Source: Oopsacas minuta (Eukaryota; Animalia; Porifera). Taken from it: a stretch of DNA of 9,405 nt. A program made the translations under genes and the position numbers. The stretch's first letter is position 1. Each line of letters begins with the position of its first letter. Below, in pieces: positions 2 through 9,405 of the stretch. The notes under the pieces are model-generated. The model searched no databases, was not told the origin of the DNA, and was given only the letters and a program-made list of their open reading frames with translations. The DNA lies in assembly GCA_024704765.1 (NCBI GenBank), contig JAKMXF010000171.1, positions 1 to 9,405 on the forward strand, in the 5' to 3' direction.

Positions 2-157
2 CGATCTGTAGATATTCTCCGTAATGTGAGTCTACTGAGACAAGACAGAGGGGGACTAATACAGACACGAGAACAGTATCACTTTCTTTACAAAACTATA
101 TGTGCATATGCTAGATATCTCAATAAGCGAGGAGAGGAAATGAATGATGTTATGTAA
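2..157 (+). CDS. Final coding exon (5'-partial) of an upstream protein tyrosine phosphatase: Q-loop and C-terminal helix, R7/STEP-like
   Basis: Frame 2 reads RSVDILRNVSLLRQDRGGLIQTREQYHFLYKTICAYARYLNKRGEEMNDVM*, with stop TAA at 155-157. It contains the classical PTP motif-10 pattern LRxxRxxxIQTxEQYxF. Not in the ORF track. Confidence 0.92.
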   Translation, partial: RSVDILRNVSLLRQDRGGLIQTREQYHFLYKTICAYARYLNKRGEEMNDVM

Positions 158-1080: not shown

Positions 1081-1565
1081 ATGGCAAATGTATTCGTGTA
1101 TTTGAAACTTTGGTTGCTAACTATATTAGTCGGAGGGATATGGATAGTATCCAACGCTCAATTAAGTGGGAATATCAAGAATACTGAACGGGTCAATATT
1201 AATAATTTGACTAGTTCTACTGCTTCTCTTAATTCTACGACTGATTATGCTCCATCTTCTGTGTCTTCCATACACAGAGATCAAACATCTCTATATACAC
1301 CCCAGGCGTCTATTCCTACACATAGTTATGCATCCACTTCAATATCTGTTACTAATACCACTAGTATTAGCAATGTGACTAGTTCTTCTGCTTCTCTTAA
1401 TTCTGCCACTGATTATGCTCCATCTTCTGTGTCTCCCATACACAGAGATCAAACATCTCTATATACACCCCAGGCGTCTATTCCTACACATAGTTATGCA
1501 TCCACTTCAATATCTGTTACTAATACCACTAGTATTAGCAATGTGACTAGTTCTTCTGCTTCTCT
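1081..1565 (+). CDS. Receptor PTP exon 1, part before the gap: signal peptide plus Ser/Thr-rich mucin-like tandem repeats
   Basis: ATG at 1081. Hydrophobic N-terminus (LWLLTILVGGIWIV) with a probable SNA|Q cleavage near residue 26, then S/T-rich repeats up to the N at 1566. Linkage to the downstream exons crosses a gap and is inferred. Confidence 0.75.
1204..1565 (+). repeat. Coding tandem repeat, 168-bp (56-aa) unit, about 2.15 near-identical copies, truncated by the N
   Basis: Units start at 1204, 1372 and 1540 (exact 168-bp period): N(L/V)TSS(T/S)ASLNS(T/A)TDYAPSSVS(S/P)IHRDQTSLYTPQASIPTHSYASTSISVTNTTSIS. Only a few substitutions between copies. Confidence 0.97.
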
Positions 1566-1566
1566 N
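1566..1566. other. Single N, probably an assembly gap placeholder
   Basis: The N falls inside the third repeat unit. The reading frame changes across it, and the downstream sequence starts mid-NIDO domain. Confidence 0.8.
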
Positions 1567-1932
1567 AGTCTGGAAATGATGCAGTCCATGATTCAGTGAT
1601 AGAGGAGGCTACACAGCTGTCTATTTCACACGCTAATGCTGATACTAACTTCAAAGCTCTTGCTGTTATTGTAGCTACGTGGTCAGAAGTAGTACCCTGG
1701 GGGCATCAGAGGGTATATGCAGGAATAAACACATTCCAAGCTGCCATAGTTACAGATTACAAAGACAGTTATGTTCTCTACGGCTACAATTGTGGGGATA
1801 TGTCATGGTCCAGTAGTGCTACATATCCTACCTCCCCTGTAATTGGTTTTACCGCTAGAGGAACCCTTTACGACAATCATTACCTATCTTATAACAAAAA
1901 TTCTCACAGCATTAGTTGTGTGCTGCAGAAAG
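1567..1932 (+). CDS. Receptor PTP exon, part after the gap: NIDO domain, C-terminal portion
   Basis: Frame from 1569 reads SGNDAVHDSVIEEATQL...VIVATWSEV...NTFQAAIVTDYKDSYVLYGYNCGDMSW...VIGF. These match the NIDO motifs ATW, NTFQ-x-x-x-x-TD and W...GF. Donor G|GTAAGT at 1933, phase 1. Confidence 0.88.
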
Positions 1933-2124
1933 GTAAGTAAGTATAAATTTTCCAATGTGCAATTTTACTAACATTTTCAATTCAACTAATCACTCAGTTG
2001 TTATGTATGGACAGTGTTACCTGCACAAACGAGCTGTCAGAGACGCCGAAAAAGGCTATCCCGTTTCCCTCTTTCTAACAAATTCCCCGTTTGTGGAGGT
2101 TTCACTGTATTCTCTCTTCTCTAG

Positions 2125-2389
2125 ATGGTCTTGCTGTTATTGGGTACAAGATATCTCTTTCAACAGCTGAATCAGATGAAATGTGTATCAAATGGCTGGC
2201 GGATGACATCAATATACAGAGTAACTTACCCTCCTTAGCAATTAGGGCAGATCCCTGTCCATGTAATTTATTCCAAGCTAGAAGAGACTCCAGATTTAGA
2301 TTTGACTATGTTACTTATATTACATCAACATATCAAGAAGATGTTATATGTTATGTGTCAAGATTTGATACTGAGGGTCTTTATCAGAG
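2125..2389 (+). CDS. Receptor PTP exon: end of NIDO and start of AMOP domain
   Basis: Acceptor ttctctcttctctAG ends at 2124. Reads DGLAVIGYKIS...CIKW...PCPCNLFQARRDSRF...QR, matching the AMOP signature CPC-x-x-x-QA-x-x-D-x-RF. Donor AG|GTTTGT at 2390, phase 2. Confidence 0.85.
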
Positions 2390-2511
2390 GTTTGTATGTT
2401 GAAAAATTATATCTTATTAATCGCCAAATGAGTATAAATTTGACTGTCCGTCTTTTGTTTGTCTTACGATAGTCCACTGTATCGAGTCCATATAAATACT
2501 GTATCGTGTAG

Positions 2512-2840
2512 ATGCTGTTATGATGTGAATTCAGATTCTGCGTTTGCTATATTTCTATCTTCTTCACAACTCACTCCATTGACTACTTCCGGCAATCAGA
2601 GAGGTTCTATCCTCTCTAGTAACCCCGTATTTTATCCCAGTGAGAGCCATCAGCAATACACAGAGAGAGATGAAGAAGGGTATGTACAGTGTTGTTTGTT
2701 GTCTAACAAGTGTGAAGTGTTCTATAGCAGGAGACCTAGTAGAGATTGTACTGACTATGAATTCTTACCTTTCACTTGGGGGTTTGGTGATCCACATGTT
2801 ATTTCAATGGATGGATTTGTGTATACTTTCAATGGAATTG
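2512..2840 (+). CDS. Receptor PTP exon: AMOP domain and start of VWD domain (GDPH)
   Basis: Splicing restores QRCCYD. Reads CCLLSNKCEVFYSRRPSRDCTDY...FGDPHVISMDGFVYTFNGIG. Donor G|GTGAGT at 2841, phase 1. Confidence 0.92.
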
Positions 2841-2903
2841 GTGAGTTATAATTATATGCAAATTTGTTGTTCAATTAATATATTTACTCAATACTTTGTA
2901 TAG

Positions 2904-3169
2904 GAGAGTACTGGTATTTGTTCCCAGTGGAACAATGTGACTTCCAAGTACAAACTCGTACACAACCAATCAGAGATACAGAAGCAACTGTATTCACTTC
3001 TATAGCAGTTAGAATCAATAACTGTTCTACTGTGTTTGTGTCTCTGTTGGGCAGAGATGATCTGTCTCTATTTGTAGACCAACAGAATCGGACAGATGAT
3101 ATTCATTCAAGTAAGGAAATCATGGATGATTGTGTTAATATTGAGTATACAGAGCCTAATTCTACACAG
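2904..3169 (+). CDS. Receptor PTP exon: VWD domain
   Basis: A 63-bp intron (2841-2903) joins to give the VWD motif TFNGIGEYWYL, followed by FQVQTRT. Donor CAG|GTCAGT at 3170, phase 0. Confidence 0.9.
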
Positions 3170-3223
3170 GTCAGTATGATATAATTTATAGATTATTATA
3201 TTTAAATTTTAATGCATTTTTAG

Positions 3224-3510
3224 AAATCAGAAATTAGTGTAGCGTATAGAAATGGAGCTTTCATAAATCTAAGAGCAGACAATGACTTGATTGCTATATC
3301 TGTATCTCTCCCTGACAGCTGTAGAGACAGAACTAGTGGACTTATAGGTCAGTGGGATGGAGACATGAGTAATGACCTGTTGATGAGGAATGGTACTCTC
3401 CTGTCTCAGAATGTGACTGATAGAGAGAAGGAAGAGTTTGCTGATTCTTGGAGGATAACACAAGATGAGAGCTTTATGATGTATGAGACAGGAAACTATT
3501 CTACTTACAA
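3224..3510 (+). CDS. Receptor PTP exon: VWD C-terminal part
   Basis: 54-bp intron (3170-3223). Reads KSEISVAYRNG...RTSGLIGQWDGDMSNDL...FADSWRI, matching the VWD GLxG and F-x-x-SW motifs. Donor AA|GTAAGT at 3511, phase 2. Confidence 0.9.
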
Positions 3511-3577
3511 GTAAGTTAATATGTTGAGTGTATCTCTAAATATTCATAGTTGAATTGTTCTTATTACTGTATTATAG

Positions 3578-4257
3578 CCCAGACTATACACCTTCTATCT
3601 ACTTGGACGAATTTCTACAGAATGCTAATATAACTACAGAAATACAAGCATTGTGTAATGGCAATCAAATCTGTCTCTTTGACGCTGTCGTGACTAATGA
3701 CACTTCTGTTGCCATGGGAACCATATTCATATCTGAAGAATCTGAGGAGACAGTGAGAGTAGGTAACAACATCCCTCCTCTCATTCAGACACCTCTCCTA
3801 CTGTTCCTATCTCTGGACAACCTGACCACTTTTGAATTTAACGTGACTGATGAAGACGAATTCTCAGTTAACTACGCTCTCTCTCCTCAGTCTGTGTTTA
3901 CTGATATTCTGCTACACAACCTGACACAGTCTGTGTTTGAGTTACAGCTGAGATTGATTCATATACCTGACTCTATGAATATGACAATAATTGCAAATGA
4001 TTCTATCGGAGTGAGTCTAGTTAGTGTGTATGTGGTTGTGTGCCATTGTGAGAATGGAGGTTACTGTTCAGATAATCCATCTGGTACAGATAGTGTAGGA
4101 GACAGCGGTTATATCAGATCATCTTGTCAGTGTCCTCTAGGCTATGAGGGTGTGTATTGTTCTGATATTATTCTAGATCCATGTTTGCAATCAGTTTGTG
4201 AAGTTGAAACTTGTCCAGCTGGTACTGAGAAGAATGACAATTCGTTGAGATGTGAAG
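3578..4257 (+). CDS. Receptor PTP exon: post-VWD Cys region, probable beta-sandwich (Ig/cadherin-like) linker, EGF domain and a partial EGF
   Basis: 67-bp intron (3511-3577). Reads CNGNQICLFDAVVT (typical post-VWD segment), NIPP...FNVTDED...ANDSIG, and CHCENGGYC...CQCPLGYEGVYC. Donor G|GTGAGT at 4258, phase 1. Confidence 0.88.
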
Positions 4258-4337
4258 GTGAGTGTATGTGTCAATAATATTTATTATGAATCTTCCAAAT
4301 TTACTTATTTAATACGTACCAAGTCACAATGTACTTC

Positions 4338-4383
4338 GCATTAGAGAGAAAATGGTTTATATTTTGCTTCTACTCTCTAATGC
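4338..4383. repeat. Perfect 11-bp inverted repeat with 24-nt spacer in intron 4258-4539
   Basis: GCATTAGAGAG (4338-4348) and CTCTCTAATGC (4373-4383). Confidence 0.8.
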
Positions 4384-4539
4384 AACATTAAACTATTATT
4401 GCTTTAGTTACAGGCTGCCAATTTGAGTTGTTGGCGGTTTTACATAGCATATATTGATGTATACGTACACTTTTTCCTGTGAATATGAACAAACTATTTC
4501 ACTATCTGTAATTTGATAGTTTAATGTTTATCTATCTAG

Positions 4540-4716
4540 ATATTGACGAGTGTGCTCTACTTTGTAATCAAACACACCAAATTTGTGTTAACACATATTC
4601 TAGTTACTTATGTACTTGTGAGGCTGGTTATGAAATTATTGATGACGTATGTGTAGATGTTGATGAGTGTAGTATGACTATCTCTCCTTGTCAACATACT
4701 TGTACCAACACTATTG
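4540..4716 (+). CDS. Receptor PTP exon: calcium-binding EGF domains
   Basis: Acceptor tctatctAG at 4539. Reads DIDEC...[10 protein letters not shown] and DVDEC...CTNTIG, the cbEGF consensus D-x-D-E-C and C-x-N-x4-Y-x-C. Donor G|GTTCGT at 4717. Confidence 0.9.
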
Positions 4717-4776
4717 GTTCGTATTATATGATTTGGAATAGTTAGATGTTATTAATGTTACGTATCGTTTCTATAG

Positions 4777-5090
4777 GTTCTTACAACTGTAGCTGTGATA
4801 TGTATTACAGTTTAGAACCAGATATGACAACTTGTAGAGGAGTTAATGTAATTGATTGTGGTACAACACCTCCTGACAACTGTGGGGTTGATTCCTGCAT
4901 TTTAGTAGAAACAGAGTTAGTTTGTGCATATTGTGAGAGAGGAACAGAATTGAGCAGTAGTGGGAGATATTGTATTGATTTAGATGAATGTGCATTACAA
5001 CCTGATATTTGTCCTGTAAGCTCAGAATGTATCAACGAATATGCTTCATACTACTGTGTATGTAATCAGGGATATGTTCAGGATAATAAG
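4777..5090 (+). CDS. Receptor PTP exon: EGF and cbEGF domains
   Basis: 60-bp intron (4717-4776). Reads GSYNCSC...DLDECALQPDIC...CINEYASYYCVCNQGY. Donor AAG|GTAGGA at 5091, phase 0. Confidence 0.9.
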
Positions 5091-5106
5091 GTAGGACTAC
5101 TCTATA

Positions 5107-5239
5107 CAGTCAACTCCCGTTATAGCGAAATCTGAAATTTTATAAGTGTAGTCCCATACCGTAAAAGTAACATATTTAATCGGGTATATCTAAGTAGTTA
5201 TCGCGGTCCCTTGAGCTTCGATATAACGGATGTTGATTG
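5107..5239. mobile_element. 133-bp MITE, Tc1/mariner superfamily (pogo/Tigger-like), in intron 5091-5280
   Basis: TIRs are CAGTCAACTCCCGTTATAGCGAA (5107-5129) and the reverse complement of 5217-5239, CAATCAACATCCGTTATATCGAA, matching at 19/23. TA flanks both sides (5105-6, 5240-1). Removing the element plus one TA leaves a 55-bp intron, the typical size in this gene. Confidence 0.85.
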
Positions 5240-5280
5240 TAGTTTATAATAAAACATTAGAATACTGAGTTTATATTTAG

Positions 5281-5428
5281 AGTATCTGTGTTGATGTTGA
5301 TGAGTGTATTGATGTTATTCCAGTTTGTGAGCCCTCTCAGATATGCTTCAACACAGAGGGTAGCTTCATATGTGCTGGATACTGTTACCTACCTAATTAC
5401 TACATACTTCCTAATGGAATATGTGGAG
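5281..5428 (+). CDS. Receptor PTP exon: last cbEGF domain (frame not shown in the ORF track)
   Basis: Reads SICVDVDECIDVIPVCEPSQICFNTEGSFICAGYCYLPNYYILPNGICG. Acceptor tatttAG at 5280; donor G|GTAATT at 5429, phase 1. Confidence 0.9.
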
Positions 5429-5492
5429 GTAATTATAATTATGAATAAAGTAATTATTCTGTTGTTAATATTTATTATATACCGCTATGTAG

Positions 5493-5819
5493 TTGGTGTT
5501 GGTAATGTGACAAGAGTTCCAGATGAGACTGAGCAATTAACAATTACGTTTACGTTGAGTATTGATGAGTTGGAGGAACGCTTGGATACAACTGGACTAT
5601 CACTCTCTACTCTCTTCTCAACTCTCAATGACTCTCTATTCACTCCCTTACAAGATATACAATTCTCATATTCTCAGACTACAGACGGTAGACTAAAGCT
5701 GATACTGATTTCAGATAGTTTCCAAGTAGACCCATTTCTTGTGACTGAAACTCTAAAAACCAGTCTTATCTCTGATTGGGCACCTTATGCTGCTTACGTC
5801 ACTCAAGTCTCTGCTGCAA
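5493..5819 (+). CDS. Receptor PTP exon: about 109-aa Cys-free membrane-proximal extracellular domain of unknown fold
   Basis: 64-bp intron (5429-5492). Open frame VGVGNVTRVPDETEQLTITFTL...VTQVSAA. Donor A|GTAAGT at 5820, phase 1. Confidence 0.8.
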
Positions 5820-6163
5820 GTAAGTTGGTATACTCATATTATCATACATAACTAATTACACGTAAGGTCTACGATAATGCATAAATTATGTGAAAAGTGT
5901 TTTGTTTACCAAGTAAATTCAATTCTCTTTTATGTAATATATCTAATGTGGGTGTGTTTAGATTGAATACTATAGAATTCTAATGATAATTATTGAATTC
6001 TCTTTTGACCTCTGTTATGTATAATTATAATATAATATATATTACTATGGAATTATTTCATAATTATCTAATTTCTTTGAATATTATTCACACAAAAGTT
6101 TGAAGTTTGTCTTCACAATTTTTCCTCTATAGTTTTATTATGTTTTCTGATTAGTTATACCAG

Positions 6164-6344
6164 TGGTTACACCTACAGACTCCCTCTCTCTATCTACATT
6201 TCTTGTTATTGCTCTATGTTGTGGAGGATTTATAGTTCTCTTATTACTCGGGCTATCTTGTGTATGGGCATTCTCTGCTAGCAGAATTACTTGGAGGAAG
6301 AAAGAGAAGGATGATTCTATTCATGAAGAATTGCTCAGCGAATT
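6164..6344 (+). CDS. Receptor PTP exon: transmembrane helix and stop-transfer sequence
   Basis: Acceptor tataccAG at 6163. Hydrophobic FLVIALCCGGFIVLLLLGLSCVWAF (about 6199-6273) is followed by RITWRKK. Donor TT|GTGAGT at 6345, phase 2. Confidence 0.88.
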
Positions 6345-6445
6345 GTGAGTAATATAACAAATACATATAGTAATACTACTATAGCTATCTCCCGTATCAC
6401 TGATTACCTTCTTGATTGGAACTTAGGAATTTCTGGTATTATATA

Positions 6446-6514
6446 CAGGGGTGGTACCAATATGCAGCATTGCTGTTATCAGCTAACGATAGAAACTGCC
6501 ATTAGCTATCCCTG
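6446..6514. mobile_element. Possible degenerate 69-bp hAT-type MITE in intron 6345-6682
   Basis: Termini are CAGGGGTGG and CTATCCCTG (reverse complement CAGGGATAG, 7/9 match). Flanking 8-mers ATTATATA (6438-6445) and ATTATACA (6515-6522) match at 7/8, like a TSD. The AT-rich background weakens this. Confidence 0.35.
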
Positions 6515-6682
6515 ATTATACATATACGTCATTTAATACTCATTGGTAGTAGCTACTGAAATAGAGCATTTGGTAACACTTGAGCTAATTTGATTAAGAA
6601 ATTCAAATAGAAAGTTTTAACAATTCTAACAATTTTTATCGTTAGATATGAATCTATGTTTGATTTCAATTCTTGTATTTAG

Positions 6683-6879
6683 GAAAAAATTGAAAGATAC
6701 ACGAGCCATAGTTTCACGTCCTGAAAAGGATACAGCAGCCTCCAATTTCCCCAATTGGCCTAAAGGAATTATCAAATCAAATCGCCTCAGCTGTTACCCT
6801 CTCTCCTACCTCCTGGCTGAAGATCCTCCAATTAGGATATATGAAGAATTCGATAGTGTTCCTATGCATTTAGCTACAG
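6683..6879 (+). CDS. Receptor PTP exon: juxtamembrane region and first helix of the PTP domain
   Basis: Acceptor gtatttAG at 6682. Ends IYEEFDSVPMHLAT, matching the EF-x-x-(I/V)P helix that precedes KNRY in PTPs. Donor G|GTAGAA at 6880, phase 1. Confidence 0.82.
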
Positions 6880-6947
6880 GTAGAATTCATCAACATACTA
6901 TTATTATTATTGTTATTGTATTATCTGACTATATCGCTTATTTGTAG

Positions 6948-7164
6948 TTGAAGATATTCCTCCTGCTTGTGAGCTGAAAAATCGTTTCACGAATATCTTA
7001 CCTCCTCCCCACTCCAGGGTACCTCTCTTCCTCAAGTATGGACTTCCTAACTCTGACTACATTAACGCTAACTTTATTCGGGGCTACAACATGGTACCTA
7101 GAGTGTATATCGCTACACAGGCACCTATGTTCTCTACAGAGCAGGACTTCTGGAGAATGGTATG
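6948..7164 (+). CDS. Receptor PTP exon: PTP motifs 1-5 (frame not shown in the ORF track)
   Basis: Reads [73 protein letters not shown], containing KNR(F), DYINA, YIATQ(A)P and DFWRMVW. Donor TG|GTGAGT at 7165, phase 2. Confidence 0.95.
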
Positions 7165-7212
7165 GTGAGTTCTGCTGGCATCTTAGAATTTATGTGATTA
7201 GTGAAAATCATA

Positions 7213-7392
7213 CAGTGGCGTCTGCCTCTATCAGCAATTCGTCTAATAGCGAAATCCGCATATTTGCAACTTTTTTCATAGACAAATAGTGCACTTTTGT
7301 ATGTTAAATAGGATGAATAATGGCAAATTCGTGAACATACTAGCTTAGGAAATTCATGCAAAATATGATTTGCTAATAGGCGAACTCAATTG
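7213..7392. mobile_element. Degenerate 180-bp pogo/Tigger-like MITE in intron 7165-7506
   Basis: TA|CAGTGG...CAATTG|TA termini with imperfect inverted repeats. Left TTCGTCTAATAGCGAAATC pairs with right GATTTGCTAATAGGCGAA. It shares the 11-mer ATAGCGAAATC (7246-7256) with the first MITE (5122-5132). Confidence 0.5.
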
Positions 7393-7506
7393 TATCTAAT
7401 TATGTTTAGAGTTTGTTTACTTTTCGAATTGTATTTCCTCATTTTGTAATATTTACTAATCAAATTACTATATTCTTCTTTCATTATCTAATGGATAATT
7501 CCCTAG

Positions 7507-7696
7507 GGAGCAGAATACAAAGGTAATCATTATGTTGACAGAAATGGTAGAACGCTCCAGAGAGAAATGTGTTCCCTACTGGCCTGACAAAGATATTCTA
7601 ACTTCTATTCGCTTCGGCGACATTGAAATAATCTCTAAGAATAAAATTGTGAGAGAAGATTATCAAATAAATGAATTTATCTTGAAACATTTGCAT
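7507..7696 (+). CDS. Receptor PTP exon: PTP motifs 6-7
   Basis: Reads WEQNTKVIIMLT...EKCVPYWP...FGDIEI...LKHLH, containing IxMLT and KCxxYWP. Donor CAT|GTGAGT at 7697, phase 0. Confidence 0.95.
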
Positions 7697-7889
7697 GTGA
7701 GTTCATCAGCATGTTATTACATACTTATTGAACTGTATTCCTTATTATATATTTAAACAAATATTTGGAAATTTATCCTATTCCCAATTGTCCTTTAATC
7801 TGACTATGGTAATATTAACACACGATTTGCACACAAGAAAATATATGCAGCTATACATCCTATTATAAAGATATATTCATTACTGCTAG

Positions 7890-9071
7890 TTAGAAGATAT
7901 AACACATATCCTCTCCTAAACAAGCGAGAGTTACTTCCCCATTCTTATTGACGGAAATCCCTCCTAGAAATGGAACAGAAGGGCCACAAGGTATTTGGTG
8001 AATAGGATTTCCCTGAGGATCATATATGTGGATACAGCGAGTATTTTGATTGCATATAAGAATATTTCCGTTTCTGTCCACTGTGAAGAATTGTGGTGAT
8101 ATATTCCCAACGTTAGGAATCAAGCTCTTTAACAAGTTTCCGCCTCTGTCGAATACTTTAACTAGTATTTCATCACAATCCAATACATATATATTACTGC
8201 CAACTACTTTCACATCTTGCGGAGACTTCAGGGATTCTCTAATCTCTCCTTTAGGATAGAATGACTCGAATATGTGTACTTTCTTCTGACCTGTATCAGC
8301 TATAAACATTCTACCTTGTTTATCCACATCAATTCCTGCTGGTTTGGCTGTAGCTAGTCTTGGATCTGTTCTTCTGTTGTCTAGCATTCTACTCTGTTGT
8401 AGCTCTCCTTTCTTATTGAAAACGGATACACGACCATTCTCCGGCTCTGTCACATACACAATTCCTTTATTCGCCTTTACTCCCCATGGTTGTGATATCT
8501 TTCCTACCCCTATGGGTTCTAGAGGCTGTCCACTCTGTTTATTAAATACACATACTTGATTATTGATACAGTCAGCCATATATATCTTGTTATCACTTGA
8601 ATCACAACCACATACCATACCCTCTTGTCCCCGACCGATTTTACGTATCGGAGTAACTTTCTTAGCATAATCTGTCAGAGTTACATATTTAACTTCAAAG
8701 AAATTGGTTAAACTCGTGAATATAGATTGGTTGTATTTAACCTTAGCTCTCACAGTCTCTTTTCTATTTTGTAATTCAGTTAATTGTAGGTTAGCCATCG
8801 TCATCATTCCTCTCTGACAGAACCTCACATTTCTTGCATTACATTTGTATGCGTCTCTCAAATGTCCCCGTACTCCCTGTAGATCTTCCAATTCTCGTAA
8901 ATGAGCCTGTTCAATCTCCACGTAACTCCTTTTGTACTCTTTCATCGCTAAGTCAAAAGCAGTTTTCTCATTTAATATTGTAGCATATACACTTTCTAAA
9001 TATCTTTCAAATTCTAATCGTTTCTCTCTGATATCTTCATCAATGTTGAAATTGTTTGAAGGATAAGACAT
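7890..9071 (-). CDS. Intronless coiled-coil + NHL-repeat beta-propeller protein (TRIM-NHL-like, no RING/B-box), 393 aa, nested in a PTP intron
   Basis: ATG at 9071 to TAA at 7890. The N-terminal ~125 aa are helical and charged. The C-terminus has NHL blades: IYMADCINNQVCVF, PWGVKANKGIVYVTEPENGRVSVF, PAGIDVDKQGRMFIAD, PQDVKV..NIYVLD, PQFFTVDRNGNILIC. Confidence 0.9.
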   Translation of the reverse strand: MSYPSNNFNIDEDIREKRLEFERYLESVYATILNEKTAFDLAMKEYKRSYVEIEQAHLRELEDLQGVRGHLRDAYKCNARNVRFCQRGMMTMANLQLTELQNRKETVRAKVKYNQSIFTSLTNFFEVKYVTLTDYAKKVTPIRKIGRGQEGMVCGCDSSDNKIYMADCINNQVCVFNKQSGQPLEPIGVGKISQPWGVKANKGIVYVTEPENGRVSVFNKKGELQQSRMLDNRRTDPRLATAKPAGIDVDKQGRMFIADTGQKKVHIFESFYPKGEIRESLKSPQDVKVVGSNIYVLDCDEILVKVFDRGGNLLKSLIPNVGNISPQFFTVDRNGNILICNQNTRCIHIYDPQGNPIHQIPCGPSVPFLGGISVNKNGEVTLACLGEDMCYIF

Positions 9072-9313
9072 GGTGTTTGTGTCGTGTTAGAGTTCCCAAA
9101 AATATCTTATATTTATATGAAATATGATAATTTGATGTTACGTTATATTACTCAAAATTATTGGAGATAAACAGCGTATTTTTGTGAGTAATATTTGATC
9201 AATAATACACAATTTCTGCCACATAAATATGTTTACTGCAGATTTAGTTAAATTTCCCGGTTGAGGACAATTAAATCTCTCAACCATTTCTATTGCTGAA
9301 TTAATAAATTTAG

Positions 9314-9405
9314 ATCGATGAAGTTCACGAGGTGTCTCACTACTGGTACAGGAAGTGGCCTGAATACGGGGTCCCTGACAATCCCAACTCACTCGTTACC
9401 TTGTT
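9314..9405 (+). CDS. Receptor PTP exon (3'-partial): general-acid loop, WPE variant of WPD
   Basis: Acceptor aatttAG at 9313, phase 0, matching the 7697 donor. Reads IDEVHEVSHYWYRKWPEYGVPDNPNSLVTL, with WPEYGVP at 9356-9376. Confidence 0.92.
   Translation, partial: MDEVHEVSHYWYRKWPEYGVPDNPNSLVTL

Follow-up and report, generated by a model that had tools for sequence, protein, structure and literature searches.

Genomic organization of the locus

Contig JAKMXF010000171.1 of assembly GCA_024704765.1 of the glass sponge Oopsacas minuta carries, on its plus strand, a gene for a receptor-type protein tyrosine phosphatase (PTP) with altered residues in its catalytic loops. The entire contig of 9405 bp was analyzed and is referred to below as the window. 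The gene was outlined by Pfam matches of open reading frame (ORF) pieces, which identify a NIDO domain at positions 1596-1940, a MUC4-type C8-3 domain at 3555-4277 and calcium-binding EGF domains at 4524-5135. Further along lies a reading frame from the ORF list (6163-6348, these being limits of the frame and not of an exon), in which a transmembrane helix (FLVIALCCGGFIVLLLLGLSCVWAF) was recognized by direct reading of the hydrophobic stretch, together with a basic sequence of stop-transfer type. A juxtamembrane exon (6680-6879, start approximate; ...KDTRAIVS...LSYLLAEDPPIRIYEEFDSVPMHLAT) then leads into the PTP domain, with a donor gt at 6880.

Three exons of the PTP domain, all on the plus strand, were delimited by translation and Pfam matching. 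E1 (6948-7164) encodes KNRF at 6977-6988 and YIATQAP at 7106-7126, the Ala codon being GCA at 7121-7123, and its translation contains YIATQAPM...DFWRMVW. E2 (7507-7696; EQNTKVIIMLTEMVERSREKCVPYWPD...) has canonical residues at its conserved positions. Only the first 92 nt of E3 (9314-9405) are present, as the exon is cut by the contig end; this piece translates as IDEVHEVSHYWYRKWPEYGVPDNPNSLVTL and holds WPEYGVP at 9356-9376, with the Glu codon GAA at 9362-9364. The three exons have tag acceptors and gtgagt donors, in agreement with the canonical GT-AG rule. They match PF00102 colinearly, at profile positions 4-62 (E1), 64-124 (E2) and 130-156 (E3) of 234, with E-values of 8e-19, 8e-10 and 3e-4, respectively, and each also matches solved PTP domains. 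E1 to E3 thus belong to a real PTP domain, which by profile match is of the classical class-I Cys-based type. The deposited gene model (window 1551-7756, 1342 aa) continues past the E2 donor into intronic sequence and does not contain E3, so that the annotated protein is truncated within the PTP domain.

The intron between E2 and E3 houses, on the minus strand, an intronless NHL-repeat gene of 393 aa (7890-9071; ORF list and Pfam), which is not part of the phosphatase. At the opposite end of the window, positions 2-157 of the plus strand belong to the last coding exon of another copy of the same type of PTP gene and cover its end, with the stop codon at 155-157.

Orthologues and tandem paralogues

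An exhaustive profile search with E1 returned two ORF fragments with 93-94% identity to E1, the next best match being a canonical receptor PTP of Oscarella (69%). Together with a word search for E3-type fragments, this profile search led to contigs L008, L009, L010 and L011 of the ENA assemblies ERZ25766962, ERZ25072730 and ERZ25071281, whose E1 exons are 92-96% identical to that of O. minuta at the protein level. The order of elements in L008, L009 and L010 is that of the window, namely NIDO, C8-3_MUC4, EGF_CA, PTP E1, E2, a minus-strand NHL gene and PTP E3, and these loci are therefore considered orthologues. The nested NHL gene (L008 11039-12244, L009 5032-6240, L010 8108-9289) thus occupies the same place in four genomes, and the juxtamembrane stretch is conserved in L008 and L009. 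In L009 and L011 a second PTP gene (tandem gene 2) lies directly downstream, ahead of ORMDL.

The exons of the two tandem genes (L009 4138-6806 and 10286-11176; L008, L011) differ in how they cluster. E1 and E3 group by species, with a dS of 0.05-0.08 within L009, while E2 has diverged deeply and groups by gene (dN 0.42). Such a pattern suggests that gene conversion has acted exon by exon on those exons that carry the motifs.

A word search with E1 alone yielded short ORF fragments, and loci L001, L003, L005 and L006 proved to be more distant PTPs, mostly canonical. One of these, a small PTP gene of another organism at L005 7511-9090 (ENA ERZ25072740), has KNRY, YIATQAPM, FWPEQGVPE, HCSAGIGRTG and QTREQY, so that its Cys loop is canonical despite QAP and WPE.

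Three altered residues are conserved

KNRF, YIATQAP and WPEYGVP had been pointed out in a sequence-only reading of this DNA as departures from the usual KNRY, QGP and WPD, and all three were confirmed at their positions by direct reading and translation. The codon GAA at 9362-9364, on which the loss of the WPD Asp depends, was likewise read directly. All six gene copies, from four assemblies, carry KNRF, TQAP and WPEYGVP; Phe, Ala and Glu are hence kept in six out of six, and the general-acid Asp of WPD is replaced by Glu in every copy. The codons vary synonymously at the three sites (TTC/TTT for Phe, GCA/GCT for Ala and GAA/GAG for Glu).

Selection on the domain was estimated by the Nei-Gojobori method with counts summed over exons. 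The ratio of nonsynonymous to synonymous substitution rates (dN/dS) is 0.030 between O. minuta and L008 (dS 2.73), 0.054 between O. minuta and L010 (dS 0.84), 0.065 between O. minuta and gene 1 of L009 (dS 1.21) and 0.057 between L008 and gene 1 of L009 (dS 0.46). The presence of the same residues in six copies, encoded by synonymous codons and accompanied by low dN/dS, excludes both a sequencing error and a decaying gene. The three altered residues are real, old and under selection.

Evidence from sequencing runs consists of Logan contigs and not of raw reads. A contig of run X1 covers 9307-9405 with zero differences; X1 is probably the source sample of the assembly, and this contig is therefore not independent support. 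A contig of X6 covers E1 (6953-7170, 9 differences) and ends at 9338, short of WPE. For X5, none of the pieces listed reaches E1 or E3.

Cys loop and Q loop in the relatives

The contig ends 29 nt past WPEYGVP, and the Cys loop of the O. minuta copy can consequently not be read in this assembly piece. About 43 codons, which hold the Cys loop in all relatives, fall between the two contig ends. The sequence-only reading had proposed to look for HCSAGxGR and the Q loop in the next exons. In the relatives the answer is VHC(A/S)SGTGRTG and QTREQY; the Cys loop of O. minuta itself lies beyond the contig end.

Complete last exons read ...WPEYGVPSNP...HPVVVHCASGTGRTGVV...GGLIQTREQY..., and a stop codon follows about 10-20 codons past the domain in L008, L009 and L010, as it does at window 155-157. 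Among the five copies with a complete E3, the Cys loop is VHCASGTGRTG in four and VHCSSGTGRTG in one (L008). The Q loop is QTREQY in four of these five and in window 2-157, and RTREQY in L011. Further E3-type ORFs on other contigs combine WPE with HCASGTGRTG, and one has HCASGTDRTG.

In PTP1B numbering, which is used throughout, the relatives have kept the nucleophile Cys215, Arg221 and Thr222, which bind phosphate, and the Q-loop residues Gln262 and Gln266 (the first Gln being lost in L011), with the water-positioning Gln among them, as well as the Glu of E2 located six residues ahead of a conserved Cys (EKCVPYWP). Tyr46 is replaced by Phe, Gly86 by Ala, Asp181 by Glu, Ala217 by Ser and Ile219 by Thr; four copies additionally have Ala in place of Ser216. 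Ser at the loop Ala position 217 is found in all five complete relatives. Ala217, Ile219 and Tyr46 line the phenyl-ring pocket; their replacements Ser217 and Thr219 are polar.

Two copies (L011 9983-10318; protein P0167) depart further from the canonical loops. Gene 2 of L011 has RTREQY, and the E3 fragment with HCASGTDRTG, on a 6.4-kb contig, is one residue short. Some copies thus seem able to lose more of the catalytic residues.

Break of the assembly at the contig ends

The exon end at the start of the window was recognized by tblastn with the last exon of L009 and by translation. Positions 2-157 encode ...SVDILRNVSLLRQDRGGLIQTREQY...NDVM followed by the stop, and also read ...QDRGGLIQTREQY... 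ahead of it; the Q loop QTREQY is canonical, and nucleotide identity to the end of the last exon of L010 is 76%. Both ends of the contig therefore fall within copies of a single repeated exon. Contig depth in X1 is raised over E1 (766 vs about 100-130) and E3 (226 vs 132), which fits this arrangement, and the repeated exon at both ends is probably what broke the assembly here.

Contigs of X1, X5 and X6 join position 7170 to 9307 with unknown letters in between. One end of this joint falls 6 nt inside the intron and the other 7 nt short of the E3 acceptor. The joint is no splice; it may reflect a paralogue, or a link in the assembly graph between exons that are repeated. In addition, in each of the four runs two intronic stretches, at about 5076-5272 and 7243-7439, reach contig depths of 20,000-50,000, compared with about 100 at other positions. 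These are repeats of very high copy number, which may be small transposable elements, and joints and loose ends are numerous there.

How telling each residue is

The distribution of the altered motifs was surveyed in 193 PTP domains of the 150 nearest representatives, 142 of these domains being scoreable for all three motifs. An xNRF motif occurs in 22 domains, 14 of which are otherwise canonical (WPD, HCSAGxGR), and no association was found between xNRF and loss of the Asp (7/22 vs 35/120, p 0.8). By comparison, QAP goes together with non-Asp loops (12/15 vs 30/127; Fisher p 3e-5, shared ancestry ignored). Thr219 is present in 5 of 193 domains, all of them non-Asp. Ser217 is present in 10, comprising four WPE domains, one WPQ, one WPD and four in which no WPD-type loop was found. 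None of the 193 nearest PTP domains has an HCAS loop.

The exact triple of KNRF, QAP and WPE was found once, in the second domain (D2) of a LAR-like receptor of Hydra, and QAP and WPE occur with HCSSGTGRTG in a D2 of Opisthorchis. Drosophila PTP10D has an identical phosphotyrosine-loop stretch, KNRFTNILP, this stretch being the only part aligned. PTP10D is an active R3 receptor-type PTP (RPTP) with canonical WPD and Cys loop, and its structures have been solved. KNRF alone is therefore not diagnostic, and its earlier interpretation as a sign of altered activity was not borne out, given PTP10D and the 14 otherwise canonical xNRF domains. PTPRQ, named in the same reading as another carrier of KNRF, was not listed in a short-stretch search of the PDB, and that claim is unconfirmed. 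Taken as a set, the changes in the sponge domain match the correlated changes of pseudophosphatase domains, but on a different branch.

Placement among tyrosine phosphatases

Against solved structures, E1 scores 63.4 bits with PTPN5, 54.5 with PTPRQ (4ikc) and 48-54 with LAR/PTPsigma domains. For E3 the scores are 94 (PTPRR), 85 (PTPN7), 76 (PTPN5) and 67 bits (PTPepsilon D1), and for P0028, a protein of Oscarella that falls in the same clade (see below), PTPRR ranks first (216 bits), then STEP and HePTP, and then PTPepsilon D1 (201). E2 scores better with R4, R3 and SHP2. On these similarity scores, the closest solved structures are the R7 phosphatases PTPRR, PTPN7 and PTPN5, with a modest margin over R4 and with E2 in disagreement. 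No human WPE protein is among the closest solved chains, and PTPRQ is absent from the top 60 for E3. The R7-like scaffold that had been suggested before thus finds support in E1, E3 and P0028, each of which scores highest, among single domains in the PDB, with an R7 phosphatase; E2 dissents.

A basic-hydrophobic stretch, K-D/N-K/T-R-A-V/I-V-S, was seen by eye ahead of the PTP domain in four species (window ~6690-6720, L008 9922-9960, L009 3890-3930). This is the position of the kinase-interaction motif (KIM) in R7 phosphatases.

For phylogenetic placement, the exons were searched and treed one by one. Careful maximum-likelihood trees of 33 rows were constructed separately for E1 and E3, and a quick E3 tree of 198 rows served as a guide only. 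The sponge genes and single-domain PTPs form one clade (support 100/100 for E1 and 100/99 for E3), within which the branching order is not resolved by the trees. Its members include P0145 and Oscarella P0028, both with WPD, QGP and HCSAGIGR, as well as Pycnogonum litorale P0109 (WPS) and Branchiostoma belcheri P0144 (WPV), both with QAP and HCSPGTGRTG. The latter two may represent an unrecognized atypical RPTP group. D2-type WPE domains form a separate clade (100/99).

Since both trees separate the sponge clade from the D2 domains, Glu arose independently of the latter, and according to the similarity ranking it is also independent of PTPRQ, PTPN21, PTPN23 and PTPRU. The convergent origin of WPE postulated in the sequence-only reading is in line with these trees, in which the sponge clade falls among single-domain PTPs, some of them with WPD. 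In its architecture the receptor has an outer part with NIDO, MUC4-type and EGF domains and one transmembrane helix. The sponge domain is its sole PTP domain, membrane-proximal and with a stop right after it; it is not the second of a tandem pair. A D2-domain origin of the sponge domain was also considered and is rejected by both exon trees.

Comparison with known WPE and R7 phosphatases

PTPN21 (PTPD1) resembles the sponge protein in combining WPE with a Phe (F927) that stacks on the phosphotyrosine ring, with Cys loop, Arg and Q loop intact (PMC10901363). Unlike the sponge receptor it is a cytosolic FERM protein, it has Ala (A1110) and Val in the loop where the sponge relatives have Ser and Thr, and the solved chains that come closest to the sponge exons do not include it. 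HD-PTP (PTPN23) shares WPE and a loop Ser with the sponge relatives, its HCSSG being that of L008 (PMC2661844), but is a cytosolic Bro1/His-domain protein of a different subfamily with KNRH and an incomplete Q loop, the sponge Q loop being canonical. The first domain (D1) of PTPRU, a redox-sensitive pseudophosphatase that binds substrates, shares WPE and a Thr between the loop glycines (HCSAGTGR vs HC(A/S)SGTGR). It differs in belonging to an R2B tandem receptor and in its disordered GSRQ phosphotyrosine loop, as opposed to the conserved KNRF of the sponge.

PTPRQ, like the sponge protein, is a receptor PTP whose single catalytic domain carries WPE. It differs in its R3-type fibronectin ectodomain and its experimentally shown phosphoinositide specificity, and its similarity to the sponge exons is below that of R7/R4 PTPs. 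The D2 domains of LAR, PTPsigma, PTPalpha, PTPepsilon and the LAR-like receptor of Hydra have WPE together with a non-Tyr phosphotyrosine loop (GWPEIGIP and DWPEQGVP when aligned). The R7 phosphatases PTPRR, STEP (PTPN5) and HePTP (PTPN7) have a single PTP domain as the sponge protein does, but with canonical KNRY, QGP, WPD and HCSAG; the KIM is their defining feature.

Discussion

We consider it probable, though far from settled, that the sponge domain acts as an attenuated or non-catalytic phosphotyrosine-binding receptor domain. In PTP1B, activity drops about 1000-fold when the Asp is replaced by Glu, and D2 domains of negligible activity typically carry WPE (PMC2638020). The same substitution strongly lowers the activity of PTPRK. 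HD-PTP was reported to be inactive in vitro owing to its loop Ser, and changing this Ser to Ala restores activity (PMC2661844). In PTPRU the loop Thr blocks the pocket, although adding or removing this Thr alone switched no activity. PTPN21, with WPE and Phe, has weak activity, its loop closing over the phosphate while F927, A1110 and V1112 pack the phosphotyrosine ring (PMC10901363). A low-activity or pseudophosphatase function, one of the options raised from the sequence initially, gains strength from the Cys loop of the relatives, because this loop has both an HD-PTP-type Ser and a PTPRU-type Thr.

On these grounds the sponge domain would still bind phosphorylated ligands and may form the thiophosphate (cysteinyl-phosphate) intermediate. 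Given a Glu acid and a loop Ser, phosphotyrosine would be turned over orders of magnitude more slowly, or not at all, and the receptor would function mainly as a slow phosphatase or as a scaffold or endodomain that holds phosphotyrosine and may be redox-sensitive. The altered site arose among single-domain (R7/R4-like) PTPs that are otherwise canonical and is therefore convergent with D2 pseudophosphatase domains, PTPN21, PTPN23, PTPRQ and PTPRU.

Several points weigh against an attenuated or non-catalytic domain. The Cys loop attributed to O. minuta is that of relatives 81-90% identical in E3, as the loop lies outside the window, and the three ENA assemblies are taken as other glass sponges from synteny and divergence only. 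The motif associations ignore shared ancestry. Very strong purifying selection over the whole domain, together with the kept nucleophile and transition-state residues, would also fit a working enzyme that compensates the Glu. Finally, reversion of Glu to Asp alone restored no activity in HD-PTP and PTPRU, which makes WPE a poor single predictor.

A normally active phosphotyrosine phosphatase, in which the five changes are co-adapted and Glu serves as the general acid in the pocket, appears unlikely to us. The very low dN/dS across the whole domain and the retention of Cys, Arg, Thr222, the Q loop and the Glu-x5-Cys motif of E2 argue in its favor; KNRF, as PTP10D illustrates, is compatible with activity, and PTPN21 is measurably active with WPE and Phe. 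Against this, each Asp to Glu change tested in an active PTP cut activity strongly, the loop Ser alone inactivates HD-PTP, and QAP, Ser217 and Thr219 accompany loss of the Asp across animals. Moreover, RTREQY in L011 and the HCASGTDRTG fragment suggest a relaxed need for turnover.

A broader proposal, which we hold with similarly low confidence, is that glass sponges possess a lineage-specific family of single-domain receptor phosphatases with an active site that was rebuilt as a set (Phe46, Ala86, Glu181, Ala/Ser216, Ser217, Thr219), is strongly selected and has spread between tandem paralogues by exon-wise gene conversion. The pocket would then serve a new substrate class (a phosphoinositide or other phospho-ester) or act as a dedicated phosphotyrosine reader, and would not be a crippled phosphotyrosine site. 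If this were true, the clade-mates from sea spider and amphioxus, with QAP, WPS/WPV and HCSPGTGRTG, would be remnants of an old atypical RPTP group.

More doubtful still is a PTPRQ-like phosphatase of phosphoinositides or other non-protein substrates, in which Glu and the polar Ser and Thr would retune the pocket for an inositol head group. PTPRQ, with WPE, indeed prefers phosphoinositides, and its Glu to Asp change shifts the preference to phosphotyrosine; the sponge pocket is more polar through Ser217 and Thr219, the domain adjoins the membrane, and strong selection maintains Cys, Arg and Q loop. However, the sponge exons show no special kinship to PTPRQ, which for E1 scores below PTPN5 and for E3 falls outside the top 60, and the WPE proteins HD-PTP and PTPRU are inactive on lipids. 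The aromatic phosphotyrosine cage, formed by the Phe of KNRF and the Tyr of WPEY, is also kept, and the idea rests solely on analogy with PTPRQ.

An artefact, whether through wrong sequencing or assembly of the three codons or through a pseudogene in decay at the edge of a contig, might be suspected from a short contig that breaks inside a repeated exon, a public gene model that is wrong at its 3′ end and support from contigs only, but is effectively refuted by identical residues with synonymous differences in six copies and four assemblies, open frames, canonical splice sites and a dN/dS of 0.03-0.07.

An attenuated or phosphotyrosine-binding receptor domain would place the sponge site within a known theme. 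Pseudophosphatases and low-activity phosphatases are known mainly from bilaterians, as D2 domains, PTPN14, PTPN21, PTPN23 and PTPRU, and no relevant literature on glass-sponge PTPs was found. In the sponge genes, Asp to Glu, QGP to QAP and polar Cys-loop residues come together in the only catalytic domain of a receptor of an early-branching animal, under strong purifying selection. For genome annotation, the case exposes a truncated public gene model and a contig break inside a repeated exon. It bears on whether WPE receptors other than PTPRQ act on lipids, and it offers a natural test of which pocket changes evolve jointly when a PTP gives up fast turnover.

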